Assembly (NCBI GenBank): GCA_002189035.1
Contig: NEEC01000012.1
Location: 1,674,001-1,738,000, forward strand
Direction: 5' to 3'
Length of the DNA: 64,000 bases
Source of the DNA: Utricularia gibba
Lineage: Eukaryota; Plantae; Magnoliophyta
The position numbers were made by a program, and so were the translations under genes. Of the stretch, positions 20,155 through 46,090 are shown in pieces (position 1 is the first letter of the stretch; each line of letters begins with the position of its first letter). Under the pieces are notes generated by a model that saw only the letters and a list, made by a program, of their open reading frames with translations, was not told the origin of the DNA and searched no databases.

Positions 20155-20552
20155 CCTGAGAGCCTTTAATTTCATTTCCAGACATCTATACTACATCCAA
20201 CACACAGGTGACTGCAAAAAACCTGGAATTCCAACGCTCAGAGCTTTTTTTAACATTATGAAGCCAGCAGTTTTTTTTTTTTTTTTTGGTTTAATGCACA
20301 ATTATCTCAAACCGTTAAAGATTTTTAAATAGATATGACTATTGTGTTTATAATCATGATGAATGTTCTTCTGGGAAAATCTATAGATTTTCTGATATTA
20401 GTAAGTTCATGATAAAATCCGTACAGACCAATATAATATTAGATATGTCATTTTCTAGAAAAAAAATAACATTAATATTAATGTGGGAGAACTCGAACAT
20501 GTAACCATGATTCCTCGCGTGGAAACATGCAAGAGATTACTTGAAAATTTCT

Positions 20553-20682
20553 ATCAAATAACTATGAACTTCACTAGAGATTATTAGGAAACTCATAAGA
20601 AATTCTACCGAAATTCCCATCAAATAACTAAGAACTTCACTAGAGATTATTAGGAAACTCATAAGAAATTATACCGAAATTC
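20553..20682. repeat. 66-bp tandem duplication in the HMA-1 promoter
   Basis: ATCAAATAACTA(T/A)GAACTTCACTAGAGATTATTAGGAAACTCATAAGAAATT(C/A)TACCGAAATTC occurs at 20553 and 20619. It is single-copy upstream of HMA-2. Confidence 0.9.
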
Positions 20683-20778
20683 ACTACATTTTGTGTTATA
20701 AAAGGAGGTCATCATCTCTCAGTAATTTCTCAAAAGCTCCATCTAGTAATCCATTCAGTGCCTTCTGCGAGTACAAAA

Positions 20779-21206
20779 ATGCCGGTTAGTAGTTTTGGAT
20801 TCACCATTTTCAGATGTCTCTTCATCTCTCTCAGATGGGTAAATGGTGTTTTTTTTTTCATGCAGTCTGAGATAGTGATCTCGCTACCTCTGAAAGACGA
20901 GGCATGTCTTTCCAAGGCGATGCAGGTTTGTGTCAGCGTTCCAGGTGAGCATGCGCCTTATCAGCTGCACAACAGCGATAATTTCGAAGGAGTTGTGATG
21001 CTTTTCTGGAAATCGGATTTTGAATTATAACGTTCCATCAAGCTGACGAAATTGATGGTGATTTAGGGTTCAGGTCGGTGTCCAGTAAGGGAAACCAGGT
21101 GGTGGTCATCGGAGAGGGTATCGACGCCTGGGCGTTGACAAAAAAGTTGATGAAGAAGGTGGCGCGTGATGCTACACTCGTGAGCGTGGAGCCGATCGAA
21201 GACTAG
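20779..21206 (+). CDS. Minimal heavy-metal-associated (HMA) domain protein, HIPP/HPP-like, 74 aa (copy HMA-1)
   Basis: Exons are 20779-20784 (ATGCCG|gttagt), 20866-20944 and 21067-21206. Protein: MPSEIVISLPLKDEACLSKAMQVCVSVPGFRSVSSKGNQVVVIGEGIDAWALTKKLMKKVARDATLVSVEPIED*. It fits the small-HMA pattern IVI.V....CRSKAM......GV.SV.......VVV.G.G.D...L...L.KK....L.SV. The 6-nt first exon and phase-1 second intron are typical of that family. A TATA-like TATAAAA lies at about 20697. Confidence 0.85.
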
Positions 21207-23589
21207 TCGCTGCTGCTTGGGGTTCTCAAAATGGCCGCCTTATGCTGAACAAATTAAATGAAATTATATTATTGCTGTTGTTGTTATTATTGTTGTTATT
21301 ATTATTATATTATTATTATGTGAATTAAGTAAGGGGTTTGTTTGTAAATGAGTTTCTATTCTAAATAAAATTGATAAATACTTCTATTAATTCCTAATCT
21401 GAAAACATTAAACAAAATAGGTAAAATGGCATTTCAAACAATAGACAATGATCGCTTTACTTAATTTGGGAGTAAACTGCACAAGGATAAATTAAAATTC
21501 ATTTTCATCTTTTTGGTTCCTACGTGCATATGCGAAAACAGTAACGAAAGTAATTTGGCTAACACATTTGAAAGCATTTGAACAAATTCAATATTCAAAA
21601 TAGAAAATGAAAATAGTGCATAAGCCATGAAACAAAAAAAAAAAAAAAATGTAAAAACTAAGTTTTCAGAAAATAAAAAAAAAGTTTTATGCAGTGCTAC
21701 AATTCCACTCTCTCTTTTACGTCCTCTCCTCAAGCTATGGTTGTTAAGGTTCCTTGACAACAGTCTTGGTCTCAACTATACTTTTGGATGTCGATGATTA
21801 ATTCTATTATCATGCTAAAACTTCTTTTCCTTCATTTTCTTCGATGGAATTCACCCAAAAAAAAAAAAAAAATGATCTCCTCTTCTCGTTGGAAAAAAAT
21901 CTTTAGAAGTAAATATTCTTCCTTCTTTCTCCACTCACTCCAACCCACATGCCCCTTTGTGATTACATGTGTGTTGCTTCCTTCCTTCTTTTATGATGAT
22001 CATGTTTATCTTTCACCTCAATGCAATTCCTATTTTACTCTTGTACTAAAAATAATTTTGCAAACTGGTTAAATATACAACCCAGCCCAAATGGGCCGGC
22101 CAAACGTGCATAGGCTTGGCTAAACCCTAAAACCACCCAACCTTTGAACTAAGAAAAAATGGCTCAAATCATATTTTTATTGAAAATAATTTAACCAATA
22201 CAAAATTTTGGTATTTTTTTTATTCTAATTCATATAATCCTAAAAAAAATTATTGACAATTAAAGTTGATGAATTCATGTGAATTATCATATCAAATAAC
22301 CTTGGTCAAGGCTGAAATATTTCCTATCATATGAAAGAGTGACTCAAGAAGTTTTGGAATTTCTGATTTATGATACATTAAGAATCCCTAAGTGCAATGA
22401 CTATAGTCATCTACTAAAGTTAACATATAGTGAGCACTTGAAGTAGATGGTTAATGATAATGACCCCCATATGTCTATATATAATAAATCAAAAGGATCA
22501 GGGGAATGGATTTCACTAAGAGCAAAAGGCCAACGTGATTTTTAAGCACAAAAATATTGTTTGGAGTCTAAAGAAACATTTTTAGAATATTGAATGAAGG
22601 ATGGCTAAGATGTAAGTGCCATAGCCAATTTTGATATTGGTAGATAGTAGTCGGGGAAAAAAGGTCATTTGTTAGAAAATATAGTTCACTATGAGGAAAT
22701 CTGATAGTCAATGTCTCAGGAGTTTTTTGGTTTTGTAAAATATTGTGGGAATCAAGAAATTCGAAAGCTAAGAAAGTTTGGTGAATGAGTTTTCAAACAG
22801 AGATGAGATTACACCAAAAATCCTTTGCAAAAAAACATTATTCAAAATAAAGGATTTGGATAAAATATATTTACCAAAATGAATGATTTGTATTTGACTA
22901 CCATTAGGAAGGGAGACAAAAGCAAGATGTTTCAAGGGATGTATGTTACTGAGAAGTGCAAGATTGGCACAAATGTGGTTGGTAGCTTAAGAATCAATTA
23001 TCCAATCATCGTTGAAACCAAAGGTAACACGAAGGGGTAGTAGAGATTCCAGTAAAATCATGATCACAATTTAGTTTGAAATTCATTAGAATTTGGATTC
23101 AATAAAATGGTTCAATTTCGCAAATGTATAAAATAGGGCTATTCTTCTAATGTATATCAAATGGAACTTCTGCAAATAAAAATTTTGTAGAGGGTTATTT
23201 CATTAATTGTGCTACACATAAACATTGAGTTGCAATTAGTTTACACAACTTAGGTCTCATCTTAGGCTAGAATTTGCTCACATTACAGCCTCAAGCCTAA
23301 GAATGGTTGGACCTAAATCCTTTTTCAATTTGAATCAAAATTATTTTGAAAATTTACAAAATGCATTTTATTAATATATAATATGTAAAAAATATAATAA
23401 AAAGTTTTGAAGAAAACTAGATATAAAATGATAAGACGATACAAAAAAGATATAAAAAATTATTTTTATATGATAAAAAATCATTTAAATATATATGATA
23501 TTTATTTATTTATTTCACAACACCAACATAAATAAAAGAATGTAATTCACTTGATTCAAATTTCCAGTTTCTACAAATACTTGTCATCA

Positions 23590-24126
23590 TCAACAGCCGC
23601 CGCCACCCCCACCTCCTCCTCCGCCACCGCCACCTCCGCATCCGGAACCACCTCCTCCACCAAAGCCGAAGCCGCTGCCACCTCCGCATCCGCCGCCTGC
23701 TGTAAACGTGCCTGCGGCTAGGCCCCCTGCCCCAGCTCCCGGAATCATCATTCCTCCGTTGCTCCTGGTGGCACCGGCACGATGCACCGGCAGAGTCGAA
23801 CCGTGACGTGCGAGGCAACAATCCACTATCACGGAAAACAGTATCAAACTGTTCAGAAACTGATAACGATTGTAGCGCTGCTTTACCCCGCTGATTGTAC
23901 GCCGCTGCATCTGGTTTGTACTTGACGGTTCTAACCGTCAAGCATGAGACTGAACCCAGCTATAAAACAGCTGGGTTCCTTGCTGTTTTACGATTCGATG
24001 AATTACGAACAGTTTTATTTTCTCTTCAATTGCCTTCGTATTTGTTCTACCCAACGTCCCTTCGACCTTTGAACACAAACCTCCCGCGCACCCGAAAATT
24101 ATGATAAAAAACGCTTCTGGACTCAT
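23590..24126 (-). pseudogene. Single-TM Gly/Cys-tailed small protein, copy GRP-A, interrupted by a solo LTR
   Basis: Removing 23850-24080 gives an open 101-aa frame MSPEAFFIIIFGCAGGLILFSVIVDCCLARHGSTLPVHRAGATRSNGGMMIPGAGAGG...GGGC*, collinear with the intact copy at 33228-33560. With the insertion, an in-frame TGA falls at 23938-23940. Confidence 0.85.
23850..24075 (+). mobile_element. 226-bp solo LTR with 5-bp target-site duplication
   Basis: Termini are TGTTCA...TGAACA (TG..CA, 6-bp inverted). CAAAC flanks it at 23845-23849 and 24076-24080. An internal CTATAAAA lies at 23960-23967. It is absent from paralogues B and C. Confidence 0.9.
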
Positions 24127-26679
24127 GGTACTGGGTCGTGTTGTTGATTCCTTTCAGCAGCCAGTAGCCGCTCTCTCTCTTTATATAACGAATGATTCAA
24201 GATAAGGAGACGCCGGAGGAAGCTTCCACCGTCAACGGTGCAAAATATATATAAGAGTCAGAAATCCGCCGACATGCGTTGACATTCTCATGTACATTTT
24301 CGCACATGTGGATACGTAGAAACCCAGATGAATGTTTGATATATTCAGAATAAATATTGATATCGGTAATGATAAATATTTTTTATCTTTTGAAATAAAC
24401 CTGTGGTTTCTATATTATTTATAAAAAAATCCTTAATTTTGAAAATTGGTAATATATTAGATTTTGATTTTAAGAACTTGCAAAAGTAAACTTCCTTGAA
24501 CAACTTGTAAAACAAACCTCAATTTTTTGAAAAACACATAAATTAGTTTGTAGAATTATAAATTTAGTGAATTACACCTCATCCACAAAACCATTCAAAT
24601 TAAACCTCAAAACCTTTAAAACTTAGCAAATTAACACTGTCAAAATTTAAAATTGGTGCATATTAGCCTCGATTCGTTTTTTTCCTATTTCACATTGATT
24701 TACTATAAATCCAATACTTAATTTTCTATTATAATATATGTAAAAAAATGATATCCATTAACTATGTTTATTGTTATCATATATTTATTTTTGTGAGGGA
24801 ATTAAATTTGTTTTAAACTATGAGAATTGTAAATTTTTATTTATTTTATTTTTCGTATTCATTAATGTATGATATAACAAGAATATATATATATATATAT
24901 AAAATACAAAACTAACATCCATATTTAATAACTTTTTCAATCTTTTTGAATTTTTATATTGAAGCTAGGTTGGATTCTTGTTCCTAATACTTCTATATCA
25001 TATATATTTGGAATAAGAATTCTGATGAGAGTCCTAAAAGTGTTTGATGATAATATTTTTTATTTTCTGTTTGATGATAATATTTTTTATTTTCCTTTTA
25101 GAATTGATACAATGAACATAAAACAATATCTTTTAAAAATAAGTCGAAGGTTATTAAAAAAAGATATTATCATCAACCCGCTCAGCCATGTAATGAAATT
25201 GTCAAAAAAAATATCTCATTGGGTAATTATATGTATATTTTTATGCATAAAAAAAAATTCAACCTTCTGTCATCGTTGGGAACTGGAAAATTACATTAAT
25301 GTGCAACTTAAATCCATTTATTGAATATGTTATGTCATGACAATTATCTCGGTGATTTGAAATTTCAGGATTAAAGTGAGTTCAATCCAAATTTACACAT
25401 TTTCTGATTGGATTTTACAATTTTTATAAAAAAATTAAAGAGAATTCTGAAAATAAAAAAACTTAGCTTTGGATAATAATTTTTAAATATTCTATATTGG
25501 AAAATAAATATAACTAAAAATTAATAAATGTAATTCAAACTATTATAAAACAATGTCATTTACAAATCTAGCTATTTTTATTAAGGAAAAAAATTAATAT
25601 GAAATGTGATTAATTTTTTTATCATATAATAATAAAATTTTTAAATCACCTTTGTCAACATCCATTATACAATCGGACATAAAGTGAATTGAAAACGCTT
25701 TTAAAACATTGGTTATCTCATATTTTCGTTGGCATGGCTTTGATGTCAAAAATAGGAAAAGTAAAAGCACGTTTGAACCAAGGTAAACGCTTGCTGACAA
25801 GGATTTACAGTGAAGCAAAGTCCTTTCAAACGTGACTATTTTTCTATTTTCACTGACATTTAATATAAGATTTATTTCATTTTTTTTTTGTAATTTATTC
25901 TTTGTCAAAGTGTTCTTGAATACCACAAAATTTTAAGAGAGTGACTTAATAGAATATCGTTGGCAAGAAACATTTGATTTAATCTATTTGTAAGGATGTG
26001 AAATGTAGAGATTAAGATTTAATGTGGAGGAATGATGCATTATCATAACACGTGAAATAATTTTGATAGTATGATTAATTCTATAATATTATTAAATGAA
26101 AAACGATGTTATAACGCTTATTGAATATCAATCTTTTAAATTAACACTTTGGAACTTGTGCAAGAGTCAATACTTAAGGTTTAGACACACTTATAAAAAC
26201 AAATTTTAGCCATATTATTTTCAAATCTATCTTTTTTTCTCGTCAATTATTCTCAAATTGTTTTTAAGAAAATCCAAATAATAAAATTCTTTATGAATAC
26301 AATCTTTATTTATTAATTTGATGTTTATATACACTTACATAATTACCTTTAATTATTTTTCAATTTTTGTTATTTCAAATCAAACACGCTTTTGATCCAT
26401 TATTCAATTTCACTATTTAAAAAGAATTATTCAAATACAATAATTTCAATAGGATAAAAAATTCGATAAAAATATTTAAATTATAATTAATAAAAAAATC
26501 ATGTTTCCATTTAAAAATTCAAAATTGTATGAATTATTTGTTACCACCGATATGAAAGTACAAAAGTACGCTTGAGCCAATAGATTAATTGATCGAATTT
26601 CAATATCAGTTAACCAGTTCATCGATCAACATGTCAATTTTAAGACACCTTCCAATGAAAGGCAAACACAACAAACAAT

Positions 26680-26860
26680 AGGATGTTATTGTTCAATATT
26701 CTACAGATGCAGAGTATACGATTAAAGAAATCTCATCACTTACTAAGTTATTGTACCCCAGATGATTTTGTTATCTTGGATCCAATTGCTCCAGACATTT
26801 CTGGTAAAACTTGTAAAAGAGGAAGAAATTGAACTGAAAACGCTTGATTAAATTGATGGT
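26680..26860 (+). mobile_element. Highly degraded Copia RNase H remnant
   Basis: GTTATTGTTCAATATTCTACAGATGCAGAGTAT reads VIVQYSTDAEY, resembling the Copia VARSSTEAEY motif. Downstream similarity is weak. Confidence 0.35.
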
Positions 26861-28776
26861 AAGGCATTGAATGCAACCTATAGAATCAAGAAATTAATGT
26901 AAAACAAATATGTAACCATTTAAAATATACACTAATTAGGAGATATGATAAATAAATAATAAAATTTAACATATCATGAATTCCTTAATTATGTGACTAT
27001 TTACGTGCATAGCTGTATTATCTTAACCTCGGTAACTTCAATTCTATTTAGTTGCATCCCTTCTTTTCTTTCATTTCAATTCATCAAACTCATACCATCT
27101 AGTGGATATAATTTATGGCCTTGTGTTAATCTTCAACGGTATCATAAAGTGGTTAAAATGCTCAAAACGATGTGATTTATGACTTGAATTTTGACATAAA
27201 AATCCTTTTTTTTTTTTTTTACTTCTAGAACATGTGAATATAATAAAATAATGTAAAACTTTGGATTTTTGGTACGATTCTGTACATTATTACCCATGAG
27301 CATATGGACCCATGGGAGGTCTCTAGAGCAATGAGTGACTTTGCCTACCATGAAACGATATTTTTCAAATTGTGATGATTTAATTTACACTGTTTTGAAG
27401 CTCATTCCAAACCGATTGTATTTGTTCATGAAAGACCGACCATCTTATGAAGGTTGGTGCTTGATGACCTTCTGCTATCAATGAAGACTTGCTTATTATC
27501 TTAAGTTCAGCTGAATGGTTAAATAGGTATCAATCTCAAATTTTTTCATATTTTCCCAACCCAAGGCTTCAAGAAGAAACTTACAATTTAGAGAAAAACT
27601 AGAATCTTCAAACGAAGAAAGACTCATGTTCGTGTAATCGACGGTTGTTTGAACTAATGAAAAACAGATGCTTATTGTGTAGTGGAACTGAAATGTGTTT
27701 CTGGGGGTGGTGTACCAGAAACTGTACGCTTGATTCTTGGAAACAAGTTTCTGTGAGAACAGGAGGGGTGGAATCAAATGCGTTGAATCGGTGAAGCTTA
27801 CCTTAACGGGTTACATTTCTCTTGCCTTTTAAGAAAATGTGTTTTGCATCTTCAATAGATTTCGTTTTCTTACCTTTGTGTATAACCTAAGCGTTCTGAG
27901 AGGGAGGCGGCAGCGTAGATGGAGGCCCTTAGCAAGAACTTCTCTTTCCCATTGGAGGAAGAGAAGATGACGCTCAGATGTGGATGCTTTCAATCAGCAG
28001 CGCAACCTCTAAAGATGCCACGGAAGGAGATAGTTGAAAGAAGGAGACGGCTTGTAGCTTCCGACCTCCAAGCCTGGTCTGATTCGAGCTTTTGAACTTG
28101 AAGCTAAATTCTGGTGTTTTGAAGAATAAGAAGTATTCTGTAAAGTTTTTAGTAAAAAGTTATATTCAATGTGTTCCTACAGATATTTATAATACAATAT
28201 CAAGCTAGAAGACAAAACTAACGGTTATATTCATGACTGTTGGATTTGTCTGTCTTGGACTTTTTGCATTATGCGATTGAGCTTGTTAGAACTGAGCCTA
28301 GCGAATCACTATTTCAGCCTGCATATTTCAGAACCTAATTTCTGGGCTCATCGTTTTCATCTTCCCATTCATCGCACAGTAAGATTTCTTTTTTCTCGAA
28401 GGGTTTGATCAAGTTCATGAGAATCAGTTCATCAGCTTCCAATGATAGTTAGTTGTGCATCCTGATGTGGAGTTTCTGGATGAAATTGGAGCCAAGCTGA
28501 AGGTGTACGTGCTGGGGGAGCTAAACGTGAGTTCTTTGGCGACCTGCAGGCTGCAATGACACAATGAAGTATGCAGCTTTCCCCGCGTGGAAACATGCAA
28601 GATATTACCTGGAAATTCCCATAAAATAACTAAGAACTTCACCAGAGATTATTAGGAAAGTCATAAGAAATTATACCGAAATTCACTGCATTTTGTGTTT
28701 AAAAGGAGATCATCTCTCATTGATTTCTCAAAAGCTCCATCTAATAATCCATTCGGTGTCTTCTGCGAGCACAAAA

Positions 28777-29213
28777 ATGCCGGTTAGTAGGGATTCACCA
28801 TTTTCAGATGCCTCTTCATCTCACAGGGGTTCTCTCTGGAATGGATATATTGTTTTTTTTTTTCTTCATGCAGGATGAGATAGTGATCTCGCTGCCTCTC
28901 AATGACGAGGCACGTCGTTCCAAGGCGATGCAGGTTTGTGTCAGCGAACCAGGTGAGCATGCGCCGTATCAGCTGCATATTAGCGATACTTTCGAAGGAG
29001 TTGTGATGCTTTCTGGAAATCGGATTTTGAATTATAACGTTCCATCAAGCTGACGAAATTGATGGTGATTTAGGGTTCAGGTCGGTGTCCAGTAAGGGAA
29101 ACCAGGTGGTGGTCATCGGAGAGGGTATCGACGCCTGGGCGTTGACAAAAAAGTTGATGAAGAAGGTGGCGCGTGATGCTACACTCGTTAGCGTGGAGCC
29201 GATCGAAGACTAG
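28777..29213 (+). CDS. Minimal HMA-domain protein, 74 aa (copy HMA-2)
   Basis: Exons are 28777-28782, 28874-28952 and 29074-29213. Protein: MPDEIVISLPLNDEARRSKAMQVCVSEPGFRSVSSKGNQVVVIGEGIDAWALTKKLMKKVARDATLVSVEPIED*. Same structure as HMA-1. Confidence 0.85.
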
Positions 29214-29393
29214 TCGCTGCTGCTTGGGGTTCTCAAAATGGCCGCCTTATGCTTGAACAAATTAAATGAAATTATATTATTACTGTTGTTATTATTATTA
29301 TGATTATGATTATTATTATTATTAGAAACATGCTCATCGAAAATTTTAAATTGATTATTTTAAATTGATTATTATGATTATTATTATGCTTGA

Positions 29394-29448
29394 ACAAACA
29401 TCTCTATTCATCGTTTGTCTATCACAAACGATGAATAGAGATGTTTGT
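29394..29448. repeat. Perfect 25-bp inverted repeat with 5-nt loop
   Basis: ACAAACATCTCTATTCATCGTTTGT-CTATC-ACAAACGATGAATAGAGATGTTTGT; the arms are exact reverse complements. Confidence 0.95.
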
Positions 29449-30219
29449 AGATCAAATATTATCGTGAATTAATTAGAATCAAAACTGTTTAAGAAATACC
29501 AGATTCGAAATCAATAAATTATTCAAATAAAAATATAAAATTATAGTAACCAATTATAAATGGCCCATATTCCATTTCAATCTATTTAGAATCGAATCTA
29601 GACTGATTATGCATACTTTTCTAGGCCTCATTCCTATTTCTTCGTCTTTTCACCTTTCTAATTTAGCATTTAATCTCGATTTCAAACATGGGATTCATTG
29701 AGCCAAGAATAATGCACAACTACCTCCAATCATATTTATAAATAAAAATAATAATTATGATTATAATCAACATGACCATTAATATGAGAAATGTTCTCTT
29801 GTATTCTATATATAGGTTTTCCAATATGAGAAAGTTCGTGATATAATCCAGACAGACCAATAATAGACTTTTAATTTTTTAAAATGTTTTTAAAAAAATA
29901 ATAAAATTAGATAAATCGTTTTCTAGAAAGCAAATAATATCATTATTAATGGGGGAACTAAAACACGTAGCAAGATATTACTTGGAAGTTTCCATCATAT
30001 AATTGAGAGCTTCATGAGAAATTGTGATGAAATTGATAAGAAATTATACTGAAATTCACTACAATTTGTGTTACTAAAAGAGGATCATCATTTCTCGGTG
30101 GATTCTGAAAACTACTATCTACTCTATCCAGAGACTTCTACTAGATTCTGATATGCCATTTTGACATGCCTCTTCATCTCATATGATTCTTAGATGGGTA
30201 AGTTTTATTTCTCATTCTG

Positions 30220-30334
30220 GCTGAAATTGTGATCTCGTTGCCTCTCAAAGATGAGAAATGTCGTTCAAGTGGATGGAGATTTGCTTTGTATGGGTGTGTG
30301 AGGTGAGCATCTGTCTTATCAGCTGCACAATAGG
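30220..30334 (+). pseudogene. HMA pseudogene (copy HMA-3): exon-2 remnant and start of intron 2
   Basis: Reads AEIVISLPLKDEKCRS followed by a frameshift. The acceptor is mutated (CTG instead of CAG), the ATG micro-exon is lost, and intron 2 (gtgagcat...cagctgcacaa) is cut by an LTR at 30335. Upstream 29810-30190 aligns with the HMA-1 promoter. Confidence 0.8.
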
Positions 30335-31050
30335 TGTGAGAGTAAAGGATCCCAAGGGGATAGCAGATAAATACTCCTCTTAGAATTTTCTATTTTATAA
30401 AAATGAAAATAAGCATACTTTTGTAAAGATAAGATTGCCTTTTATTGTGAAACAAAATGTAATCGGGATGAATGGATGAAGCTGAAGCTCTTAGAATCGA
30501 GCTTCTAGTTCTGCATCATAATTTGAAGGATTTTGATCTTCTTTCTTCTCTAGTGAGCAAAGGGAAATTAATAAAGATTACAATTGGCTCTTTAACTTGA
30601 ATAAAATGTGCCTAAAAGGGACTATTTTCTATAGCCTCCCCTCAAGTCGGGTAGAATTGCCAATAGCTGATCCAGCTGCAAAATCCCTTTGTTGAAGGTT
30701 GGGCTAGGCAATGATTTCATATATATATCAGCTGCTTGATTGACAACTTATGTAGTGAAGTTTCAAGAAGCCAGATTGATGATGTTGCCGGACAAAGTAG
30801 CAATCCATTTCATTATCTTTGTCTCACTCATGGCAAACAGGATTTTCAGCAATCTATAGAGCGGATTTACTATTACTGAATAAAGGAAATCGGTAAACAA
30901 AAAGTACTCTGTATATAGAGAGGCCGATGCTCATCTGATGGTTTAATAGTGAATCAAACTTGCAGAAAAAGATGAAAAGCTCTTCTAGGCAAACTTTAAT
31001 ATTCTAGCAGCACATAAGTTGAAGAATACAATAGAATCACAACAATAGCC
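30335..31050 (-). mobile_element. Truncated Copia element: RNase H remnant, PPT and 3' LTR (30335-30633)
   Basis: The minus strand reads ..SKSAL*IAENPVCHE..KDNEMDCYFVRQH..KLHYIS..AADI..KSLP (Copia RNase H end). PPT TTGAGGGGAGG lies at 30635-30645, and a ~299-bp LTR starts TATAGAAAAT and ends CTCTCACA. Confidence 0.75.
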
Positions 31051-33227
31051 GTGGTCCAATTTCAGTTCTAAGTGTAGGGTGATCCACATCATCACCCTAC
31101 ACTTAGATTTAACCACGAATAGATCGCAAACAAATGTTTTAGACTTTCATATGAAAATTGGTTTTATTCATGTTACTATTTATTTTTTTCTTGTTAGACT
31201 ACAACTGGAGATGTATTGTTGATACTATTTTGTAAAATTGTATTATTACTTTTCAGTATGAGTAACTAAGCATAATATGGTTCCTTGAAGTAAAAAATTT
31301 CTTGTCAAACCCTAATAAAAATCTATTTAGAGATAGATCAAAACATAAGATAAACAAAAATTTAGATTGACTTAAAACTTTTATTTTGTTTGATGATCGA
31401 TTTTTAATTTGAATAGAATAAAGATAATGATCAACATAACATTTTGAAAGGTTCAAGGCATTATATTATTTTTTTTCTACACAATAATCGGATTTACTTG
31501 TTTATTACTTTTAATATGTTTTGTTGTTGAACTATATTAATCCTAAGTTAGACTTAATATTACATCATGAAAAAAAATGCATTAAGCATTTTGCTCTTCG
31601 TGTTTAACTCTAATTCTTCTATATGCTCGTATTTGTTTGATGTTTAATTATATATTGAGTTTACAAATTTATTTAATATAATAACTATCATTTATATAAC
31701 TACATGCAAATTTTCTCATTTATCAAGCATCAGCTCAAATCTTGAACTCAAGAAAATCAACATCAGACTAAAAAGGGGGGTGTCTGAGAGTCCCCTAAAA
31801 CACGCAACAGTCTATGTATGCATCAACACCGCCTACAATGTCGTATACGATGGGCGCATTCGTTACATATTTTATGTATTCATTTCATTACACAATACCC
31901 ATGGAGGGACCATCATCACAAGATACTCATACCATACTTAATCTAGCTCATCCACATAAATTGATGTCTGCAATAAAAAAACCTATTTAAAAACGTTTTC
32001 CAAAAATAAACATTGAAATTCAGGATAACATAGCGCAAACTATAATATTTCTTTAGGATGTATTAATAAAAGACATTTGCATGCAATGCATGAGTATCAT
32101 TTAAGCATTAGTGGTGTGGGTAAATTAAAAAAAAAAATACAAATGCCATTTATGCACAAGTCACATATGAAAATGAATTTATTAGTAATTGAAAATTATG
32201 TATAGACAACATTCATATAAAATTATTTGAAATTATTTTTAGATATCTATACTTGACTTTTGCATAAACAGTGTCATATGTACTATTTTTGTGTATTTTC
32301 CAGATATACATAAGTTGATTATGTATGAACGGCATCTATATATTTTTTATTAGATAGAAAAAATATAAACATAACAAAAAATAATTTCTAGTTATATTCT
32401 TCATATCTACAGAAACGTGATTTATGCACGACGCACAAGTGTGTGGGAATCAAGAAATATAACAAAAAATAAGAATGTATAAAAGATATATTTATGCCAT
32501 GTCATCTATGCATGATTGACATTAGTATATACAATAAAAACCAATTTTAAAATATAATATGAGCACCATCTATGCATAAGTTACGTTTAGATATTTAAAA
32601 AAAATTCAAATATTCGCACGGTTGGCCTGCAATTTACAAAATGTGTTAGCATTCAGATTTGACTAAATGGTTCAATTTCATAAATATATAAAATAGGTTA
32701 TCCTGCCATTGTTTACCAACTATCACTATTCTGCAAATAAAAATTTCATAAAGGGCTATTTCACTATTTACTCTATGCATAAATATTGAGTAATGAATCA
32801 TTTACACAAGTTCTCATAGCATTACTTTAAATTAGTGCTATTTATTAATCATTATAGGATGGCCATTGAGATTATAGAAACAATTCTACTACTAAACTCA
32901 TTCTTATCTCATGATCAAACTGAAACTCAAACTCTTGTTGATGGATTTGATCAAATGTGTTTAATAATTATTTTCGATTGAATCCTTCTCATTAAACATT
33001 TTAAGTTAAATCTCGAATTTTTCTAAATATTCTTCAAGCTAAATAATGATGAAGTACACGTTTATAAAAGAAAATATTATGTAAAAATGAAATCTAATTT
33101 CATATTTAATATAAAAATATAGTAAAAATTATTTTTACATGATAAAAAATATTTAAAAATATATTGTATTTATTTTGTCAACACCAACATAAATAAAACA
33201 AGTCAATTCACTTAATCTAAATATTTG

Positions 33228-33560
33228 TCAGCATCCACCACCACCACCACCACAACCGCCGCCGCCGCCGCCACCCCCTCCTCCACCACATCCGCCGCCA
33301 CCACCACCGCCTCCACCACATCCGCCGCCTCCTCCTCCGCATCCGCCACCTGCTGTAAACGTTTCTGCAGCTAGGGCCCCTGCCCCAGCTCCTAGAATCA
33401 TCATTCCTCCGTTGCTCCTTGTGGCACCGGCACGATGCACCGGCAGAGTCGAACCCTGATGTGCGCGGCGACAATTCAGTATCACGGATAACAGTATCAA
33501 GAAGACAACAAAACCTCCAAAGCACCCGAAGATTATAACGGGAAGCTCTTGCGGACTCAT
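33228..33560 (-). CDS. Single-TM Gly/Cys-tailed small protein, copy GRP-B, 110 aa, intronless
   Basis: The ORF has a hydrophobic segment (LPVIIFGCFGGFVVFLILLSVILNC), a basic juxtamembrane, a conserved NGGMMILGAGAGA core and a (G)nC tail. A TATA-like TTATATATAT and GA-rich leader lie upstream and are conserved in all three copies. Confidence 0.85.
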   Translation of the reverse strand: MSPQELPVIIFGCFGGFVVFLILLSVILNCRRAHQGSTLPVHRAGATRSNGGMMILGAGAGALAAETFTAGGGCGGGGGGCGGGGGGGGGCGGGGGGGGGGGCGGGGGGC

Positions 33561-34479
33561 GGTACTGGATCGTGTTGTTGATCCCTTTCAGCAGCCAGTA
33601 GCCGCTCTCTCTCTCTATATAACGAACGATTCAAGACAGGGAGACGCCGGAGGAAGCTTCCACCGTCAACGGTGCAAAATATATATAATTATCGAAGAGT
33701 TGAACATTCAGAAATCCCACGTAGATGCGTTGACATTTTCCTATTACTCGACAAAGACTTTTGCACTCAGTCACAAACCCAAATATCATACTCATCCGAT
33801 AAATGATATATTCGGAATAAATATTTTTTATCTTTTTTTTTTAAATTGATATGAACATAAAAAATACCCTTTTTTGAAAAAACCTGTGGTTTCAATATCA
33901 CTTTTATTATTTATAAAAAATCCTCAATTTTGAAAATCGGTAGTATATTAGATTCTCATTTTAAAAACGTGCAAAAGTAAACTTCTTTGACAAACTTGTA
34001 AAACACGCCTCAAATTTTTGAAAACACACAAATTAGTTTGTAGAATTGTAAAATTTAGTGAATAACACCTCATCCACAAAACCATTCAAATTAAACCCCA
34101 AAACTTTTAAAACTTAGCAAATGTCATTATAAACACCATCAAAATTTTAAAATTGATGCATATTAGTCCTGCATTCATTTTTTTTCCTATTTCACCATGA
34201 TTTACTATAAATTCTAATATTTGATTTCTAGTTATGAAATATGTACAAAAATAATATCCATTAAATATATTTATTTTTTGAGTAGCCTTCCAACTGTACG
34301 TTGCCACAGCATCATTTGGGCACCTTATTATGCTCAAGTTGTTGATGATATTTTGACACAATAATGATACTGAAAGAAAAAATAAAAGTTAAATATCAAC
34401 TAAAAGAAGGGCACAATACACTCGAAGTAAATAATTTTAAAATATAACTTGAACATTTGAGAGCATCATATGCAATACC

Positions 34480-35250: not shown

Positions 35251-35585
35251 TGCAAAAAAATAGGTTGTTATTTAAACAAAATTTGCTTAATCAGGTAGAG
35301 TTTTCACTCATACTGAATTTAGGATTTAAGATTTCAAAATCGATATAACATCATCTTATTTCAAGATTGATTTTTTATTTTCATGCCTATTTGCTAATTG
35401 TTGTTCGGTATCCGTACCCAACTCCCAATTGCAAGTATTGGTTTATTAAAATAATGATAGAGTTTATATAATTTACAATGTGCAGCATAATATTATAAAT
35501 TGAGGTGTTACAACACGCTTAATGCTAATGTATATCTTATTATAAATCAAAATATTCCATTTTTATTTTTAAATTGAATTTCTAC

Positions 35586-36708
35586 TGATAGTGATTCTGC
35601 AAGTGCATAGAAACCGTCGAAGTAATAAAATAAGATCGTATCCACAAAGAATTGTTATTGGAATTTTCTTTTCAAATAAAGACTCAAAAAGACTGAAAAC
35701 AAAAGAAAGATTTGGATTTAAAAACAATAAGAAAAGTGGCATTGGATTTAAGATCCACCTTGCTTAAAACTCGCCCTTGCATGTGTGTAAACCTTGAAAA
35801 CTGACCTGCTTGCGCAAGCTCTGGAGATGTTATTCTAAAGTAGTGCTACTCAGTGAGCGTTATAGCACTCTCCCTTGTTTTGTGGGATTATGGAATCAAC
35901 CACGCCACCAGAACCATTTCACCTCTTATGATAACCCATGTTTTCCTCACACTCAAATCTAACTCCTACACCGCACACCTTGCAGATAAATTAGATAGAA
36001 TGTGTCTTACCAACGTTGTCCGATTGAGCCCTTCTCCTTAGGTGTTTGAGGCCAACCTTTGATTTTCTCACACTCCTTTCAGGTTATGTGATACAAAAGA
36101 GCATGTTGGTAAAGAAAACGCTGCGAAAAACAGAATCAAACTTCAATTTAAATGTCGAAAAACATAGTAAAACAGTCACACACGCAGGATTTGCGCAAGC
36201 AAGGCTTCATCGCAGATTCTCAGCCGCAAACACCTACACACGTAGACTTGACTCTAACATGAAAATGGACACGAAAATAGGAAAAGTGGTCAAAGACATT
36301 TCTAATGGTTGAGAGAGTGAGGTATTTATAGTAGAGTAGATCCAAGTCTTCATATTGGATTTGTTTGATGGGCTTGGATAAGATCTTCTATCCAAATCTT
36401 TGAAAATTATTTTCATATCTCTATGTTATTCACGAATTTTGAACCAAATCTTCATCGTTTGACTGAGTCTCGGGCTGAGATTCGTAGCCCATCAAGTCCA
36501 TAATTTGGTGAATCTTGATTTCTCCTCAAATTGATCCAAAAGTACCCTAAAAATCCACAAAATACACTTTCTCTCAAAAAAGATCAAAGTAGTGTGAAAG
36601 ATACAAAATCAATTGAAAATAATGAGAAAGTGGAGTGTAAGATAAGTAAAAATAACTCTAAAGAGTAATGGAAGAACAAGTTTTGGAATGACACAAAATC
36701 ACTTATCA
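35586..36708 (-). mobile_element. Gypsy (Athila-type) solo LTR, ~1.12 kb
   Basis: Termini are TGATA...TATCA. Flanks are TCTAC (35581-35585) and TCTAA (36709-36713), a 5-bp TSD with one mismatch. It carries the CAAGTGCA...AAGTAATAAA...GATCGTATCCACA terminal motif seen in reversed Athila-type LTRs. Confidence 0.75.
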
Positions 36709-37830: not shown

Positions 37831-38567
37831 TCTAGCTATCTGTTAAACGTCATTTTCTAAGTGTTTATTATGTGTTATTACATGTTAGATTAGGATTAAG
37901 TAGCTCACATTAGGAGTTATATAAATAAGTATTTCATTTTATTAGAAAAATTCAATTACTGTATTTTATATATATTTTTGTTGTTTTTTTTTCATGCACT
38001 TTGATCAAAATGTGTCAAGAGTCAATCTTGAAGTGTTGAAAGAGATTTGCAAGAGATTAGACACTGACATTTTGTGACTTGTACACGAAATAGATCCATT
38101 GTGGGCGGAAGACTCACACTAGTTAGAACTTTTGACTTACGATATGCCAAAATCTATAACAATAATTGAGCACTTACTTGCATGTATGAGAAAGTTGGTT
38201 GTGCATGCAAGATAAAAAGAATACTGAAAAAGGAGCAGAGGAAGTTAATGCATGTGTGAGTGAATTAAAATAAACTGAGAACACTTGTTTTCGAACCTTT
38301 TTTTACACTTAGTTTTAGCACTAGAACTTTTGGTTATTCCTCTCCACCAATGGGAAGAAGAAGACTTTAGCTTTCCATTTAATTTTCTATTTTCATGGCC
38401 ATTCTTTGTTGAACTGTTTTAGTTTCTACGAATAAATGAAGTTTCCATCTACGTCTTGAGCACTAATCTTGGTTCTTTACTGAAATTCTTTTGGATTTCA
38501 CATATTTCCATACATCATATTATAGTATTTCTGTAACGTCTCTTAGTCACAATCCATTAGCAAGCCA

Positions 38568-38668
38568 CTCCTCGTAGATTTTGATGAAGAATAAGGTGAA
38601 TATCACCATCTCCAGTCCTCCTCGTAGATTTTGATGAAGAGTAAGGTGAATATCACCATCTACAGTCC
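38568..38668. repeat. 50-bp tandem duplication
   Basis: CTCCTCGTAGATTTTGATGAAGA(A/G)TAAGGTGAATATCACCATCT(C/A)CAGTC occurs at 38568 and 38618. Confidence 0.9.
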
Positions 38669-39004
38669 TATTAGTTCGAGGGAGATAGCGAATGGTTTGT
38701 AACCAAGTTACTATGACAGTGGATGAGTAGTGACCTTGGACCTAAATTCTTCTTCAATTCGAATCAAAATTATTTTGAAAAATTACAAAATATATTTTAT
38801 CTAATCAAATAATATATAATATATAAAAATAATAAACAGCTTCGAAAAAAAACAATATAATGGTGATATGATTGGTAATAGATATAAAAAATTATTTTTA
38901 TATGATAAAAAAAATACTTAAATACATATTGTATTTATTTATTTACTTTATCAACACCAACATAAATAAAAGAAATCAATTTCACTCAATCCAAATTTTT
39001 GTCA

Positions 39005-39253
39005 TCATCCACCACCACCACCGCAGCCTCCGCCGCCGCCACCTTCAGTAAACGTTTCTGCAGCTAGGGCCCCTGCCCCAGCTCCTAGAATCGTCATTCC
39101 ACCGTTGCTTCCCATGGCACCGGCACCATGCACCGGCAGAGTCGAACCATGACATGCGAGGCAACAATTCAGTATCGCGGAAAACAGTATCATGAAGACA
39201 ACAAAACCTCCGACGCACCAGGTGATTATAAAGGGAAGCGCTTGCGAACTCAT
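39005..39253 (-). CDS. Single-TM Gly/Cys-tailed small protein, copy GRP-C, 82 aa (short tail)
   Basis: MSSQALPFIITWCVGGFVVFMILFSAILNCCLACHGSTLPVHGAGAMGSNGGMTILGAGAGALAAETFTEGGGGGGCGGGGG*. Flanks 38735-39004 and 39254-40140 align with copies A and B. Confidence 0.82.
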   Translation of the reverse strand: MSSQALPFIITWCVGGFVVFMILFSAILNCCLACHGSTLPVHGAGAMGSNGGMTILGAGAGALAAETFTEGGGGGGCGGGGG

Positions 39254-40423
39254 GGTACTGGATCGTATTGCTCATCCCCTTCAGCAGCCAGTAGCCGCTC
39301 TCTCTCTATATATAACGAACGACTCAAGACAAGGAGACGCAGGAGGAAGCTTCCACGGTCAACAAATACATAATTAACGAAGAGTTGAAGAGTCAGAAAT
39401 CCGACGTAGATGCATTGACATCTTCATATTACTCGCCAAAGACCCAAATATCATACTCATCCGATAAATGATATGCTCGGAATAAATATTTTTTTTTATC
39501 TTTTTTTTTTAATTCATATGAACATAAAAAAATGACTTTTTTTTTAAATAAACCTGTGGTTTCAATATTTTAACACTTTTATTATTTATAAAAAATTCTC
39601 AATTTTGAAAATTGGTAGTATATTAGATTCTCATTTTAAAAACTTGCAAAAGTAAACTTACTTCTTTGACAAACTTGTCAAACAAGCCTTAAATTTTTGA
39701 AAACACATAAATTAGTTTGTAGAATTGTAAAATTTAGTGAATTACACCTCATCCACAAAACCATTCAAATTAATCCCCAAAACCTTTAAAACTTGGCAAA
39801 TGTCATTATTTACACCACCAAAATTTGAAAATTGATGCATATTAGTCCTGCATTCATTTTTTTCCTATTTCACCATGATATACTATAAATTCCATTTGAT
39901 TTTTAATTATGAAATATGTAAAAAATAATATCCATTAAATATGTTTATTTTTATGATATATTTTTTTTGTTATTGAGTTAAATTTGTTTTAACTTATGAG
40001 GATTGTAAGTTTTTATTAATTTAATTTTATTTATCTCATTCATTAATGTATGAAAACTCATTATTAATGTCTGACATAATCACAAGGGATATATTAAGAT
40101 ACAAAACTAACATTCATTTTTATTAACGTTTTCAATATTTTTTTTCATTTTTAATGGTCTTAAGATGTTACAAAACTAACATCCATGATGAAGCTTCCAT
40201 CCAACAACTATCTTTTTACAACCACTATTATTTTGGATGAGTTCATTTGTGTGCACCACTTCATCCTCCGTCAACTAATCTTGAGTCATCTATAAATAAG
40301 ATATAATTTTAACACATTGAGATCAAAAGCAATAACTACATATAAATCAAAAACATGCTCACAAGATATGTATATCTGGCATGGTTATATATGTTCGATT
40401 TGTATTGAAGAAAGCAATAAATA

Positions 40424-43400
40424 TGATGAGGGATAAAGTCGGCCAAGGTTAATCGGATTCTGAAAAGCTGCGAAAAGGGACTCTAAGGGGATAATGCCTA
40501 CCGACAGACCAACATCTGTCAGAAATCTGACAGGTATAACCATATGACGCAGTCTGAAAAGCAGCCGAATTACGGCATAACAGGCGGCCGATATCTAAAA
40601 AACGAAATCGTATAGCAGATGCAGAAAGCAACCGACATTTGCAGATGTCAGGATTCGGTCAGATTGGGCCCTTCTATAAATAGAAGGAACTATGACGAAA
40701 AGTGGGTTGGAGACAAAAAGGAAGATTCTTCAACTTGTATTCTCTTCTTCACCTTCTCCGTCTAGTGAAAATCTTTTCCAGCAAGTTCCGGTAGCTCCGT
40801 GATTTTTCCGCTTTCCAGTGGTTTCCACGTAAAAATATTTGCTCATTTTTACTTCAATTGAACCAACCGTGAAAAACACAACTAAGTGCGACATTCCCGA
40901 TCGCACCTGTTACCTTAAGTCGGCCTCCCACCGGATACCGATTTTACCCGTAACATTTTTGGCGCCCACCATGGGGCCACGTTCTACAGCCCCACTTGAA
41001 AAACCCACAGGAGCTACTCATTAACCACGGATCATGGCAGAAAATAGCATAGCCGCCGACCCGGCTCGGGACGGAAGCGCCGACGCGCGAGACCTCGGCC
41101 TTATGATCACCAACAGGGTGTAGCTGAAGGCCCTACTAATGGAAATCCTTGCCGACCTCCGGGCACCTTCAGGTCTCAACTCCAATGCCTAGGAGGGAAC
41201 ACCCGAAACTGCACCACGAACGGAGAAGCAACCTCTTATTCCGGATTACCCCCTAGATATAGGAACTGAATCCAAAACCGAGGAGGAGATGCTGTGAAGA
41301 AAGAGGCACAACCAAGTCATATATGAGCCAGGAACTGATAGGGAAAACATGGCTGGAAAAATTTTGGAAGAAAGGGAAGAAGAGCTGAAGAGAGAGTTAG
41401 ACTAGATCCGTGAGAGGAGAAGACTTATCGACAAGCAGAGATCGACGAGAAGAAGAGAGGATAGGGGCATCAGGGACATTTTCGATCAGAACGTATCCAC
41501 CGGGAGAGGGGACGTTCTGCGCAACATCGCTTTGGCCTTGAAGAGTGGGGTTGAGGGAGCAGTTGGGACCACAACGCTGCGTTTTGATCCCTTCTCAGAC
41601 GATTTAGTCGAGGAAGAACCCGAGAGAGGATTCAGGGTCCCAGATGGATTACCTACGTACGACGGGAAAGGGGATCCTATATCACACGTAACTGACTTCA
41701 ATATGAGGATGTCCACGGTTCGACATTCAATGGCCATGAAGTGTAAGTCGTTCGCTTGCTAGCTCCAGAAAGGAGCAAAGACTTGGTTCAAACAGTTAGA
41801 ACCATGCAACGTGGCATCTTATCGGGAGTTAGTGCTGCTTTTCACTACCCGATACGCTGTCAACATCGAAGCTCCACCTTCAAAGGCAGCATTATACTCT
41901 GTTTGGTATGACCACCGAAAAGAGAGCTTGAGAAGGTTCATTGACCGATTTAATTGCCAAGCGCCATGGATGCCTATTTGGGATACCACCAAATTTTCGT
42001 TGCCGAGAGAGACCAACCAAAAACCACCTTCTACACCAAGGATGGGGTTTACTGTTACGTGGCCATGCCCTTAGGTTTAAAGAATGCATGGACGACTTAT
42101 CAGAGGTTGGTAAATAAAATATTCTCTTCTGAAATTGGTACCTCGATGGAAGTATATGTGGACGATATGATTGTAAAATCTATGAATGAAGAAGACCACT
42201 TAACGTATTTGGATTCTTATTTCTCTTTGTGCCGGTTATACGGGTTAAAACTCAAACCCACTGAAATGTTGCTTCGGGGTGCGAAGTGGAAAATTCCTGG
42301 GGCATTACGTATTAGAGAGAGGAATTGAGGCCGACCCCGAGAAGATTAAGACAATATGCGAAATGCAACCCCCAAGGACAATCAAGGAGTACGAGAGCCT
42401 CACGAACAAATTGGCTGCGCTCAGCCGTTTCATATCTCGATCAGCTGATAAGTCGGCATCCTTCTTCAAAGTCTTGCGAAAGGGAAACGCTCTAGAATGG
42501 AACGAGGATTGCCGGCTTGCCTTTGAAAAACTCAAGGAATATCTCTCATCACCCCCACTTCTTGTGGTTCCGAGAGTAGGAGAGCCTTTAGGACTATATC
42601 TATCTATATCGCCCATTGCAGTTAGCGCAGTCTTGACAATCATCTCGGCAGATAAACACCTTCCGGTGTATTATGTGAGCAAGGTTTTGTTACCAGCCGA
42701 AACCCGTTATTCGGTGACAGAAAAATTCATCTTGGCTTTGAAGATGGCGGCCACAAAGCTAAGGTCAAATTTCCAAGATCGGCACATCGTGGTATTCACC
42801 AATCAGCCCTTGAAGAATATCCTATCTCGACCAGAGATTTCCGGAAGGGTTGCCAAATGGGCGGTCGAATTGAGTACAATGGATATTGAGTTTAAATTGA
42901 GAATAGCAATCAAGGCCCAACCTCTTGCCGATTTTGTGGTCGAAATGACTAGGCCTATAGACCGTTTTGAAGAAGCCAATGACCGATGGACCATGCACGT
43001 TGATGGCTCGACGTACAACGGCATTGGAGGAGGAATAGACATCCGAACCCAAGACGGGGAACACATTTATATCACGGTGAAATTCTTATTCCCAGCCTCC
43101 AACAATGTGATCGAGTATGAAGCATTGATTGAAGGAATGAAAATTGCCAAGGAACTTGTGCAAGGACAATTTTCGAGTGAATACGAAACCCATGACCCCC
43201 TCATGGCTCTATACCATATTTAGGTAAAGGAGCTAGCAAAAACCTTCAAGTAATTCACCCTATCGCACGTGGCTTGCGAGGAGAACGGATCAGCAGATAG
43301 CCTCGCCAGATTTTCTGCAAGTTTTCATGAGCTGAGGGAAGGAAGTGTGACGATTCGGCTGCGGGATCAACCTTCAATGACCTTGCGAGCCGTGAATTAT

Positions 43401-44484
43401 ACTACCCAGCAACCAGGAAATGATATCTCTCCACAGCTAAGTCACCTCGATGATTGGACATCACCCTACGTCCGGTATCTATGAAATGGAGAAACACCAT
43501 CTAATAGATCCAAAGCCCGACAATTAGAGATGAGAGCAAAGAGATATACACTAGTAAATGGAATTCTCTATTGCAGATCCTTAGATGGACCCCTCTTGAG
43601 GTGTATCGGGGCAAAACATTCTCAAGAACTTATAACCGATCTGCATGAAGGGGAATGTGGCAGCCATATCGGCATACGATCCTTATGCAGGAAAGCCTTG
43701 AGAACTAGGTATTATTGGCCAACTATGGAGCGGCATATTACCAAAATAGTGAAGAAATGCAAAGTATGACAATACCATGCGAGTACACCGAGAAAGCCGG
43801 TAAATAACCTGACCCCTCTTCCATTCTCATGCCCGTTCGATCGATGGGGAGTGGATATCATGGGGCCGTTCCCCCAAACCTCGAGCCAAAGGAAATTTGT
43901 CATCGTGGGAGTCGAGTATTTCTCCAAATGGGTGGAGGCTGAGGCCGTGGCAAAAATATCAGAGGAGACTGTTATTCAATTTCTGTGGAGAAATATCTTC
44001 GTCCGGTTCGGAATCCCTCAAGAACTGGTGACCGATAATGGAACCCAATTCGCTGGGGGAAGAATGAAGGCATTCCTAGATAAATATACAGTCAAACACA
44101 ACTTCACCTTGGTGTATCACCCGTAGAGCAATGGTCTCACAGAGGTAACGTATCGAACGCTCCGGCTAGGAATGAAGACTAAACTTGAAGATTTTGGAGG
44201 ATCATGGGCAGATCGCTTGGATGAAGTGCTGTGGTCATATCGCACCACCCCTCGGACCACCATGGAAGAATCTCTGTTCTTATTGGTTTACGGTTCAGAA
44301 GCCGTGTGCCCTATTGAACTAACCCTGAAAAGCTAATGGGTGGAACATTATAATGAAGAAGAAAATGCTGACCTGCGAAAACTGGAGTTGGAGCTGTTGG
44401 AAGAACGCAACTAAGTGCAACATTCCCGATCGCACCTGTCACCTTAAATCGGCATCCCATCAGATACTGATTTTACCCGTAACA
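40424..44484 (+). mobile_element. Ty3/Gypsy Tat (Retand-like) LTR retrotransposon, internally deleted and degenerate
   Basis: The 5' LTR is 40424-40955 (TG..CA). The PBS TGGCGCCCACCATGGGGC at 40960-40977 is complementary to the tRNA-Lys(CUU) 3' end with 1 mismatch. Domains are a gag remnant, RT (MDAYLGYHQI, YVDDMIVKS), RH, an additional aRH (WTMHVDGS..ASNNVIEYEALI) and integrase (HEGECGSH, MDIMGPFP, VTDNGTQF). Only the last 77 bp of the 3' LTR remain (44408-44484). TSD AAATA flanks both sides. Confidence 0.93.
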
Positions 44485-45469
44485 AAATAAATTAAAAAAC
44501 ATAAAACTACACTTTTTCCCTCCAGATTATTTGTGAACTATCAAGCCAATAAATGTGTATTGATGTATATGCATTTGATACATCATCATTACGGTAAGCA
44601 TCACAAGATAACCTTAAATACCTACCAACAATTGGAAGGAGTTGTAAAGTTTTCAAATGTAATTAAATAGAAAGTGTGTTAAAAAAATGGTACCAATTAT
44701 TATAAGAGATATAGTAACATTTAGAAGTAATTCATTAAAGAGCTATGTAAAAAACTTGTGTTTCTAGCTATCGATATGGTGATAATGACAAAACAAAGCT
44801 TGAGTCTAATGTTCTTTGTGAAATAATTTATGTTCTTGAGTATTTATTGAACACCACATGTGTGTCTGTTTAAGGGATAATGATTTCTGTTTTTTAAATG
44901 CAACACGCAGTAAGACATTAGAGTGCAATATTACAATTATAAGAATTAGAACATGAGTGGAAAGGGTAAATGTTTGATCATATCTTTCATCATGTTGATG
45001 AGGACAAGTTTCTTCATAATTCGCATCCTCATTTTTCATTCCGCATACGGTTTCCAAGGATTCCTAATAAGTCATTCAACATGTTATGAAAAACAAATCT
45101 ATATTACATTTAAGGCAAACTGTGAGGTACCTCATATTTAAGAGTAGGTTTGAAAGAGAGGGAAAAAGAAGAATAATGATTTTAAAAAAAATTGCTTCAG
45201 AGATTACATTTTGTTTCCAACAAAATCTATAGAAAATGCAGAACTATCTGCTTCACCCAATACTTAATTTCTCAAACCATGAGCTTTGGAAACAAATAAT
45301 CTCTTCCCCAACTTAGCTAGTCCCTCAGATATCTATACTTGTTGCTGTTTTCCTTTAGCTAGTGTTTTCTTCTATTGAGAGACTCATTAACTATTGAAAC
45401 ATCTTCTCATGTTGTTCTACAACAACGAAAACTAGGTAGATCCAGTTCTCCTCGGCTACTTTTTCATCT

Positions 45470-46090
45470 TCTCATAGCATTATAGAAACAACTATACTAC
45501 TAAACTCATTCATATCTCATACCATGCTTTTTTGAATCAAATCCTAGTATGTACATATAGCGATCTGCTCTCTCATTCTTCGATATTGTCTGTTTTGAAC
45601 ACTTAAGTCTCATAATTTTACGATTTACTCTAGTGAGGAAAATGCCTTGCACAAGATTAGAGAAGACCTCTTCATATAAATTCTCATTTTACCTCATCTG
45701 TAATCAATGTAAGATTCACCTAAATTGTTTGTAGTTTTCCTTGAACCAGGCCCTTCCACCCTTCTTATAAACTCAGTGTCTTCATTGAAGTTTGCCCTAC
45801 TATTGATTACATGTCTGGGTTCGGTTTTGATATCAAATGTAACGGCTTAGCTCCTTATACACTACTTAACTTTTACAATATTATGTTTTTCCTTTTGAGG
45901 AAAAAATCTTGTATAAAATTAAAAAAAATACTTCTATTTACGCAAATTTTCTCTTACGTCCATAACCAATATGAGATATCATCACTAGATTCCAAACCTA
46001 ACTCAAACTATTGTTGATGGATTTGATCAAGCACATGTTTATAAAAGAAAATTTCACATAAAAATAAAATCCAATTTCAAAACACCTATA
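45470..46090. repeat. Flank fragment of a fourth HMA/GRP array unit
   Basis: 45480-45530 (TATAGAAACAA...TAAACTCATTC) and 45995-46080 (AACTCAAACT.TTGTTGATGGATTTGATCAA...TTTATAAAAGAAAAT) match 32870-33100 just downstream of GRP-B. No coding remnant seen. Confidence 0.7.

Follow-up and report, generated by a model that had tools for sequence, protein, structure and literature searches.

A stretch of 64,000 nucleotides of Utricularia gibba DNA (contig NEEC01000012.1, positions 1,674,001 to 1,738,000; hereafter the window) carries two unrelated families of very small genes, one encoding what is very likely a minimal HMA protein and the other, here called GRP, a hydrophobic helix followed by a tail of glycines and cysteines. 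An earlier note on this DNA had seen both families recur in a convergent layout and had raised the idea that they form a two-gene functional module. The question posed by the locus is whether the two genes stay together because they work together, or are neighbours by common duplication only. We give a probability of roughly 0.7 to the second answer, namely that this is an ordinary birth-and-death cluster produced when DNA was duplicated locally in an AT-rich stretch, invaded by transposons, that lies downstream of COG5. The earlier note, too, had described births and deaths in two unrelated families of small genes, and this is supported here.

Copies and layout of the two families

Three loci derive from HMA, two of them intact genes of 74 codons and one a dead copy. 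Another three derive from GRP (an intact copy, a copy whose tail is shortened and a copy split by a 226-bp insertion), and a fourth GRP unit is left as a relic. The order and strands are those that the earlier note had given:

20545-20682, plus strand: 66-bp tandem duplication in the HMA-1 promoter (2.1 copies, 94%)
20779-21206, plus strand: HMA-1, exons 20779-20784 (ATGCCG), 20866-20944 and 21067-21206, 74 codons, all introns GT-AG
23079-24956, minus strand: GRP-A duplicated block, with an interrupted frame running from 24126 down to 23590
23850-24075, minus strand: 226-bp insertion in the helix-coding part of GRP-A, with ends TGTTCA...TGAACA, bringing an in-frame stop
28777-29213, plus strand: HMA-2, exons 28777-28782, 28874-28952 and 29074-29213, same structure as HMA-1, inside the duplicated block 28579-29324
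29710-30333, plus strand: psiHMA-3, a dead copy
33228-33560, minus strand: GRP-B, an intact single-exon frame of 110 codons in block 32639-34278
39005-39253, minus strand: GRP-C, an 82-codon frame in block 38736-40153
45479-46104, minus strand: relic of a fourth GRP unit, three short 3'-flank pieces without a reading frame

Self-BLAST of the window shows that both families recur, with three loci each. The HMA-1 block (20511-21315) matches the HMA-2 block with 90% identity (E = 0), and 20292-20975 around HMA-1 matches psiHMA-3 with identity at 78% of the aligned bases (E 3.5e-51). The three GRP blocks match one another with E-values from 1e-94 to 0, being 87% identical between GRP-B and GRP-C and 70-80% identical when GRP-A is compared with either. 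A self dot-plot had been suggested for finding the unit boundaries, and the self-comparison gave two blocks of about 4.6 kb, 20292-24956 (4.66 kb) and 29710-34278 (4.57 kb), alike in order, orientation and size. In the same comparison the HMA-to-GRP spacers (21315-23079 and 30333-32639) did not align between the blocks; the long flanks said to be common to the units are thus common within each family, but not across the spacers.

The bare fourth flank described previously is real but small. In GRP-B the counterpart of its three pieces (45479-45520, 46000-46041 and 46024-46104) is the 3' flank (32871-33128); the pieces are broken up by about 480 bp of foreign DNA. A tblastn search of the 64-kb window found no other relic of either family. 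Two places with weak similarity to HMA exon 2, at 50.7 kb and 57.9 kb, were dismissed on inspection as relics of transposons.

The two intact HMA genes encode the same exon 3 protein, and differ in 5 of the 26 residues of exon 2, including a change from Cys to Arg (ratio of nonsynonymous to synonymous divergence, dN/dS, about 0.8). HMA-1 has an alternative in-frame start at ATG 20860, and the 66-bp unit that is duplicated in its promoter is single-copy in HMA-2 and psiHMA-3. The third copy had been taken for a pseudogene, and indeed it lacks exon 3, the ATG region and the acceptor AG, and its frame is disrupted twice, by a deletion of 1 nt and an insertion of 5 nt.

All three GRP copies retain the ATG, the position of the stop and, some 60 nt upstream, a TATA-like box. 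The GRP-B tail, with 45 Gly and 5 Cys, consists of 3.7 copies of a 30-nt unit, which accounts for the regular spacing of the cysteines. Compared with GRP-B, GRP-C has an in-frame deletion of 84 nt in the tail (28 codons), and its last Cys codon has become the stop. A 5-bp direct duplication, GTTTG, stands on either side of the insertion in GRP-A (24076-24080 and 23845-23849), and to judge from its ends and this duplication the insertion looks like a solo long terminal repeat (LTR). Together, insertion and duplication add 231 nt (77 codons), with stops inside the insert. Within it a GT (24066) and an AG (23860) form a candidate splice pair, whose use would remove 207 nt in frame.

Proposed duplication history

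The two old blocks have diverged to a similar degree. Jukes-Cantor (JC) distances are 0.26 (interval 0.21-0.31) between HMA-1 and psiHMA-3 and 0.20 (0.16-0.24) between the 5' flanks of GRP-A and GRP-B. Since the blocks are alike in order, orientation and size and these distances overlap, the data fit one duplication carrying both genes. The remaining copies are of single genes and of different ages: HMA-2 lies in a copy of about 0.75 kb (JC 0.13), and GRP-C, which carries no HMA, in one of about 1.4 kb (JC 0.083 against GRP-B). Because HMA-2 and GRP-C are single-gene copies, the pair was co-duplicated once at most. The recurrent two-gene unit of the earlier note therefore holds for HMA-1/GRP-A and psiHMA-3/GRP-B only, and repeated duplication of both genes as one unit was not found, the pair having at most one block duplication (JC 0.20-0.26) to its account.

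HMA-2 is moreover a mosaic with respect to HMA-1. In the 5' halves, from the promoter through intron 1 and exon 2 into the beginning of intron 2, the two genes are 88% identical (JC 0.13); in the 3' halves, from there through exon 3 into the 3' untranslated region (UTR), they show 3 mismatches in about 295 nt (JC 0.007). The tract of near-identity runs over 20987-21283 and 28996-29290, which are 99.3% identical with intron and 3' UTR included. As it extends to the non-coding intron 2 and 3' UTR, it points to gene conversion and not to selection.

The order of events that we infer from these comparisons begins with a block of about 4.6 kb, holding HMA on the plus strand and a convergent GRP on the minus strand, which would have been duplicated once to give HMA-1/GRP-A and psiHMA-3/GRP-B. 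The GRP-B segment alone would have been copied later, giving rise to GRP-C and to the fourth copy, now almost erased, and the HMA-1 segment alone would have given HMA-2. A recent gene conversion would then have brought HMA-1 and HMA-2 to 99% identity in their 3' halves. Decay would have followed its own course in each copy, psiHMA-3 losing its start and last exon, GRP-A receiving the solo-LTR-like insertion and GRP-C losing 28 tail codons. Linkage between HMA and GRP would be passive, since both lay in one duplicated segment.

The two gene products and their pairing

The HMA exons were searched one by one, and not as a joined spliced protein, and folding covered exon 3. With exon 3 (45 aa) the best match of known structure was the HMA domain of rice OsHIPP19 (7b1i), at a marginal E-value of 0.011, followed by the Pik-1 HMA domains, sHMA25 and sHMAx. 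About 13 of the 16 matches listed are plant HMA domains, always at chain residues ~42-77, which is the collinear position. The sole match of HMA-1 exon 2 was to residues 7-29 of a reconstructed (ancestral) Pik-1 HMA, with an E-value of 0.86. In the Atlas, exon 3 has clusters of plant HMA proteins, 72-90 aa long, as its neighbours (score 0.82), and the ten best family matches all agree; a word-index protein search with the same exon found nothing. The AlphaFold2 (AF2) model of the exon 3 fragment has strands at residues 2-6 and 9-13 and a helix at 20-34, which fits β2-β3-α2, with a mean predicted local distance difference test score (pLDDT) of 69. Each of these items is weak but they are concordant, and we consider it very likely that the HMA genes encode a small HMA protein.

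At the position of the MxCxxC motif HMA-1 reads L-K-D-E-A-C and HMA-2 L-N-D-E-A-R, so that the motif is absent; delivery of metal is for this reason unlikely. Both proteins end in ...VSVEPIED followed by the stop, without a CaaX box, and neither has a signal peptide. By the definitions of HPP and HIPP proteins (PMC11611257, PMC10459601), lack of the CaaX box makes them HPP-type and not HIPP; nor, by the first of these papers, do they count as metallochaperones. The genes would thus most likely encode a CxxC-less, CaaX-less small HMA protein of HPP type. The two proteins are probably cytosolic and non-metal-binding, with a βαββαβ fold, and would function through protein-protein contacts. Of the minimal HMA protein described earlier, what stands, very probably, is its membership of the sHMA kind, as kin to rice HIPP19 and the Pik-1 HMA domains.

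For GRP, the earlier description of a single-helix protein with a Gly/Cys tail is borne out. AF2 places one confident helix, read as transmembrane, at residues 5-35 of GRP-B (pLDDT 82-92) and leaves the remainder disordered, and mean hydropathy over residues 9-27 is 2.83. An Arg-Arg pair follows the helix in GRP-B only; it suggests that the tail probably faces the cytosol. Beyond this, the protein could not be linked to any family. None of the three GRP copies matched a Pfam family at E<=1, PF07172 included; the N-terminal 70 residues had no match in the word-index protein search; and an exhaustive search with a profile of the N-terminal 69 columns found no true relative among 1.84 billion representatives. 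The only match of that profile was rejected as an artefact of the TLPVH repeat. The three GRP frames are also absent from the exact-sequence index, scans of metagenomes with both HMA and GRP proteins were blank, and so was a plasmid DNA search, which is irrelevant here. The Atlas label "loricrin-like" given to GRP-B (0.91, with a low recognition score) was taken as compositional, and the literature on that name was uninformative. As the protein database lacks the proteins of the host itself, absence there says nothing about annotation; and the nearest sampled genomes are distant, with at most 69% identity for a pentatricopeptide repeat (PPR) gene of the window, so that "no relatives" means none detectable only.

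Several observations weigh against reading the locus as an ordinary cluster of this composition. On the side of HMA, the assignment is built on marginal exon-wise E-values, exon 2 of HMA-2 had no match in PDB, and Pfam found nothing with the separate exons. On the side of GRP, the core has no indel in 147-207 nt as opposed to 1.4-2 gap events per 100 nt in the flanks, and the length changes of the tail are all multiples of three, which together give a hint of some coding constraint. Moreover, the frames of both families are open in at least two copies, and in both families at least one copy is intact, HMA-2 and GRP-B lying about 4 kb apart. Each old block has one broken partner, GRP-A by its insertion in the first and the dead psiHMA-3 in the second. 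This reciprocal decay fits the neutral resolution of duplicates, but it is also compatible with a need for one copy of each gene.

Two alternatives have to be set against the ordinary cluster. It is possible, though unlikely, that the GRP frames are chance open frames in a GC-rich repeat bearing (GGN)n, and that only the HMA genes are functional. The blank searches of Pfam, the word index and the 1.84 billion representatives speak for it, as do the copies' dN/dS of 0.66-1.55, the even spread of changes over codon positions (10/7/7), a coding part no better conserved between GRP-B and GRP-C than the 5' flank (88.4% versus 92.1%) and a tail made of a 30-nt tandem repeat. However, a stretch of 68 stop-free codons has a chance of about 0.04 at this composition, and all three copies share the start codon, TATA-like box and stop position. 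The indel-free core, the confident AF2 helix and a GC island of 56-62%, typical of exons in an AT-rich setting, also speak for a gene, and the lack of matches is weak evidence when the sampled genomes are so distant. We read GRP as one of two things, a fast-evolving gene that is young and confined to its lineage and encodes a membrane-anchored protein, or a neutral frame, the data being compatible with either.

The other alternative is the functional module itself, in which a helix-anchored GRP would recruit or partner the CaaX-less HMA protein at the membrane, taking the place of the isoprenyl anchor of HIPPs, with selection keeping the two linked. The convergent order and spacing repeated in two blocks would suit it, as would the survival of an intact copy of each gene at close range and the absence of indels in the GRP core; contact is topologically possible, given an HMA protein without signal peptide and a GRP-B tail that the Arg-Arg pair suggests to be cytosolic. 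Yet the pair recurs through one block duplication only and later copies are of single genes, each old block has lost one partner, and the dN/dS of GRP is near 1, with no sign of purifying selection. The convergent layout, with 2.4-2.9 kb from stop to stop, leaves no shared promoter, and conserved pairing cannot be demonstrated for a GRP whose relatives, if any, escape detection. We also found no description of a cluster of HMA and glycine-rich genes in the literature. A functional HMA/GRP pairing is thus unsupported, and we regard the module as very improbable. Slightly less credible still is its more specific form, in which GRP would be a young lineage-specific membrane protein whose cytosolic Gly/Cys tail docks the CaaX-less sHMA at the membrane, the two genes being a selected substitute for the HIPP lipid anchor. 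Passive hitch-hiking in one duplication unit, which the earlier note had kept as its fallback, fits the data best.

Setting of the cluster and comparison with known systems

The host stretch is plant nuclear DNA. The COG5 gene (Pfam COG5_C) ends near 20154, and the cluster that follows lies in DNA of 26-36% GC, against which the reading frames stand out as islands of 56-62%. An intact, single-exon PPR gene lies at 11185-12723, with At2g42920-like names among its matches. Its best database matches come from Lamiales (Sesamum, Handroanthus, Perilla, Paulownia and Erythranthe) at only 64-69% identity and include no self-match, which places the host in Lamiales and indicates that host and close kin are missing from the protein collections used. 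Rfam found no family in the whole window. One transposon lies inside the cluster, between GRP-C and the fourth relic:

40871-44484, plus strand: degenerate Ty3-type retroelement, with reverse transcriptase, RNase H and integrase in broken frames

At its two ends (40871-40955 and 44400-44484) this element matches itself over 85 bp only. Other repeats were seen as well. An inverted repeat (25923-26366 and 35571-36051, 64% identical) occupies the spacers after GRP-A and GRP-B and is probably an old transposon relic. Outside the cluster, a pair of direct repeats (50368-51098 and 57487-58219, 86% identical) lies near a copia-like fragment (58243-58356). Immediately upstream of the HMA-2 block there is a GC-rich, coding-like fragment of 34 codons (28455-28559, containing …VHPDVEFLDEIGAKLKVYVLGELNV…); it has no match in Pfam or PDB and may be a captured gene fragment.

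Pathogen effectors repeatedly target small HMA proteins, which are also the source of integrated decoys in immune receptors, and this lends some interest to fast-evolving local arrays of their genes. The present locus adds an example of a CxxC-less, CaaX-less sHMA from Lamiales with a clear conversion tract, and in GRP we may be seeing the early life of a lineage-specific gene. With no support for a two-gene module in metal handling or immunity, the locus is mainly a tidy case of birth and death.

Among known systems, the secreted plant GRPs (PF07172, and class II with its Cys-rich end) share with the GRP of this locus an N-terminal hydrophobic segment followed by Gly-rich repeats with cysteines, and also occur in tandem arrays. 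The locus GRP differs from them in having no Pfam match at E<=1, in a hydrophobic segment of about 23-30 residues without a positive N-region, which looks like a membrane anchor and not like a cleavable signal, and in a conserved non-repetitive linker (GSTLPVH...AETFT) that has no match anywhere. The CYSTM tail-anchored, Cys-rich stress proteins are likewise very small, cross the membrane once and contain cysteines and Gly-rich stretches. However, the architecture is reversed, with the helix of the locus GRP at the N-terminus and its cysteines in the soluble tail, and no Pfam match connects the two.

There are counterparts on the HMA side as well. Copper chaperones with an HMA domain, such as ATX1 and CCH, are of similar size and probably share the βαββαβ fold, but the locus proteins lack MxCxxC, HMA-1 keeping only the second Cys and HMA-2 none. 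Compared with rice HIPP19 and the Pik-1 HMA, the locus protein has only 74 residues, without a proline-rich extension, and comes from a Lamiales dicot and not a grass; HIPPs in general differ from it by their CaaX box. At an E-value of 0.011 the match is too marginal for assignment to a clade. With these rice proteins it very probably shares a single HMA domain in a very small protein, and they are its best matches of solved structure, at collinear positions; like the Pik-1 HMA it has a degenerate metal-binding motif (PMC11611257). In belonging to a family that has multiplied, it is like the plant sHMA proteins as a whole, which are a large family expanded in plants.

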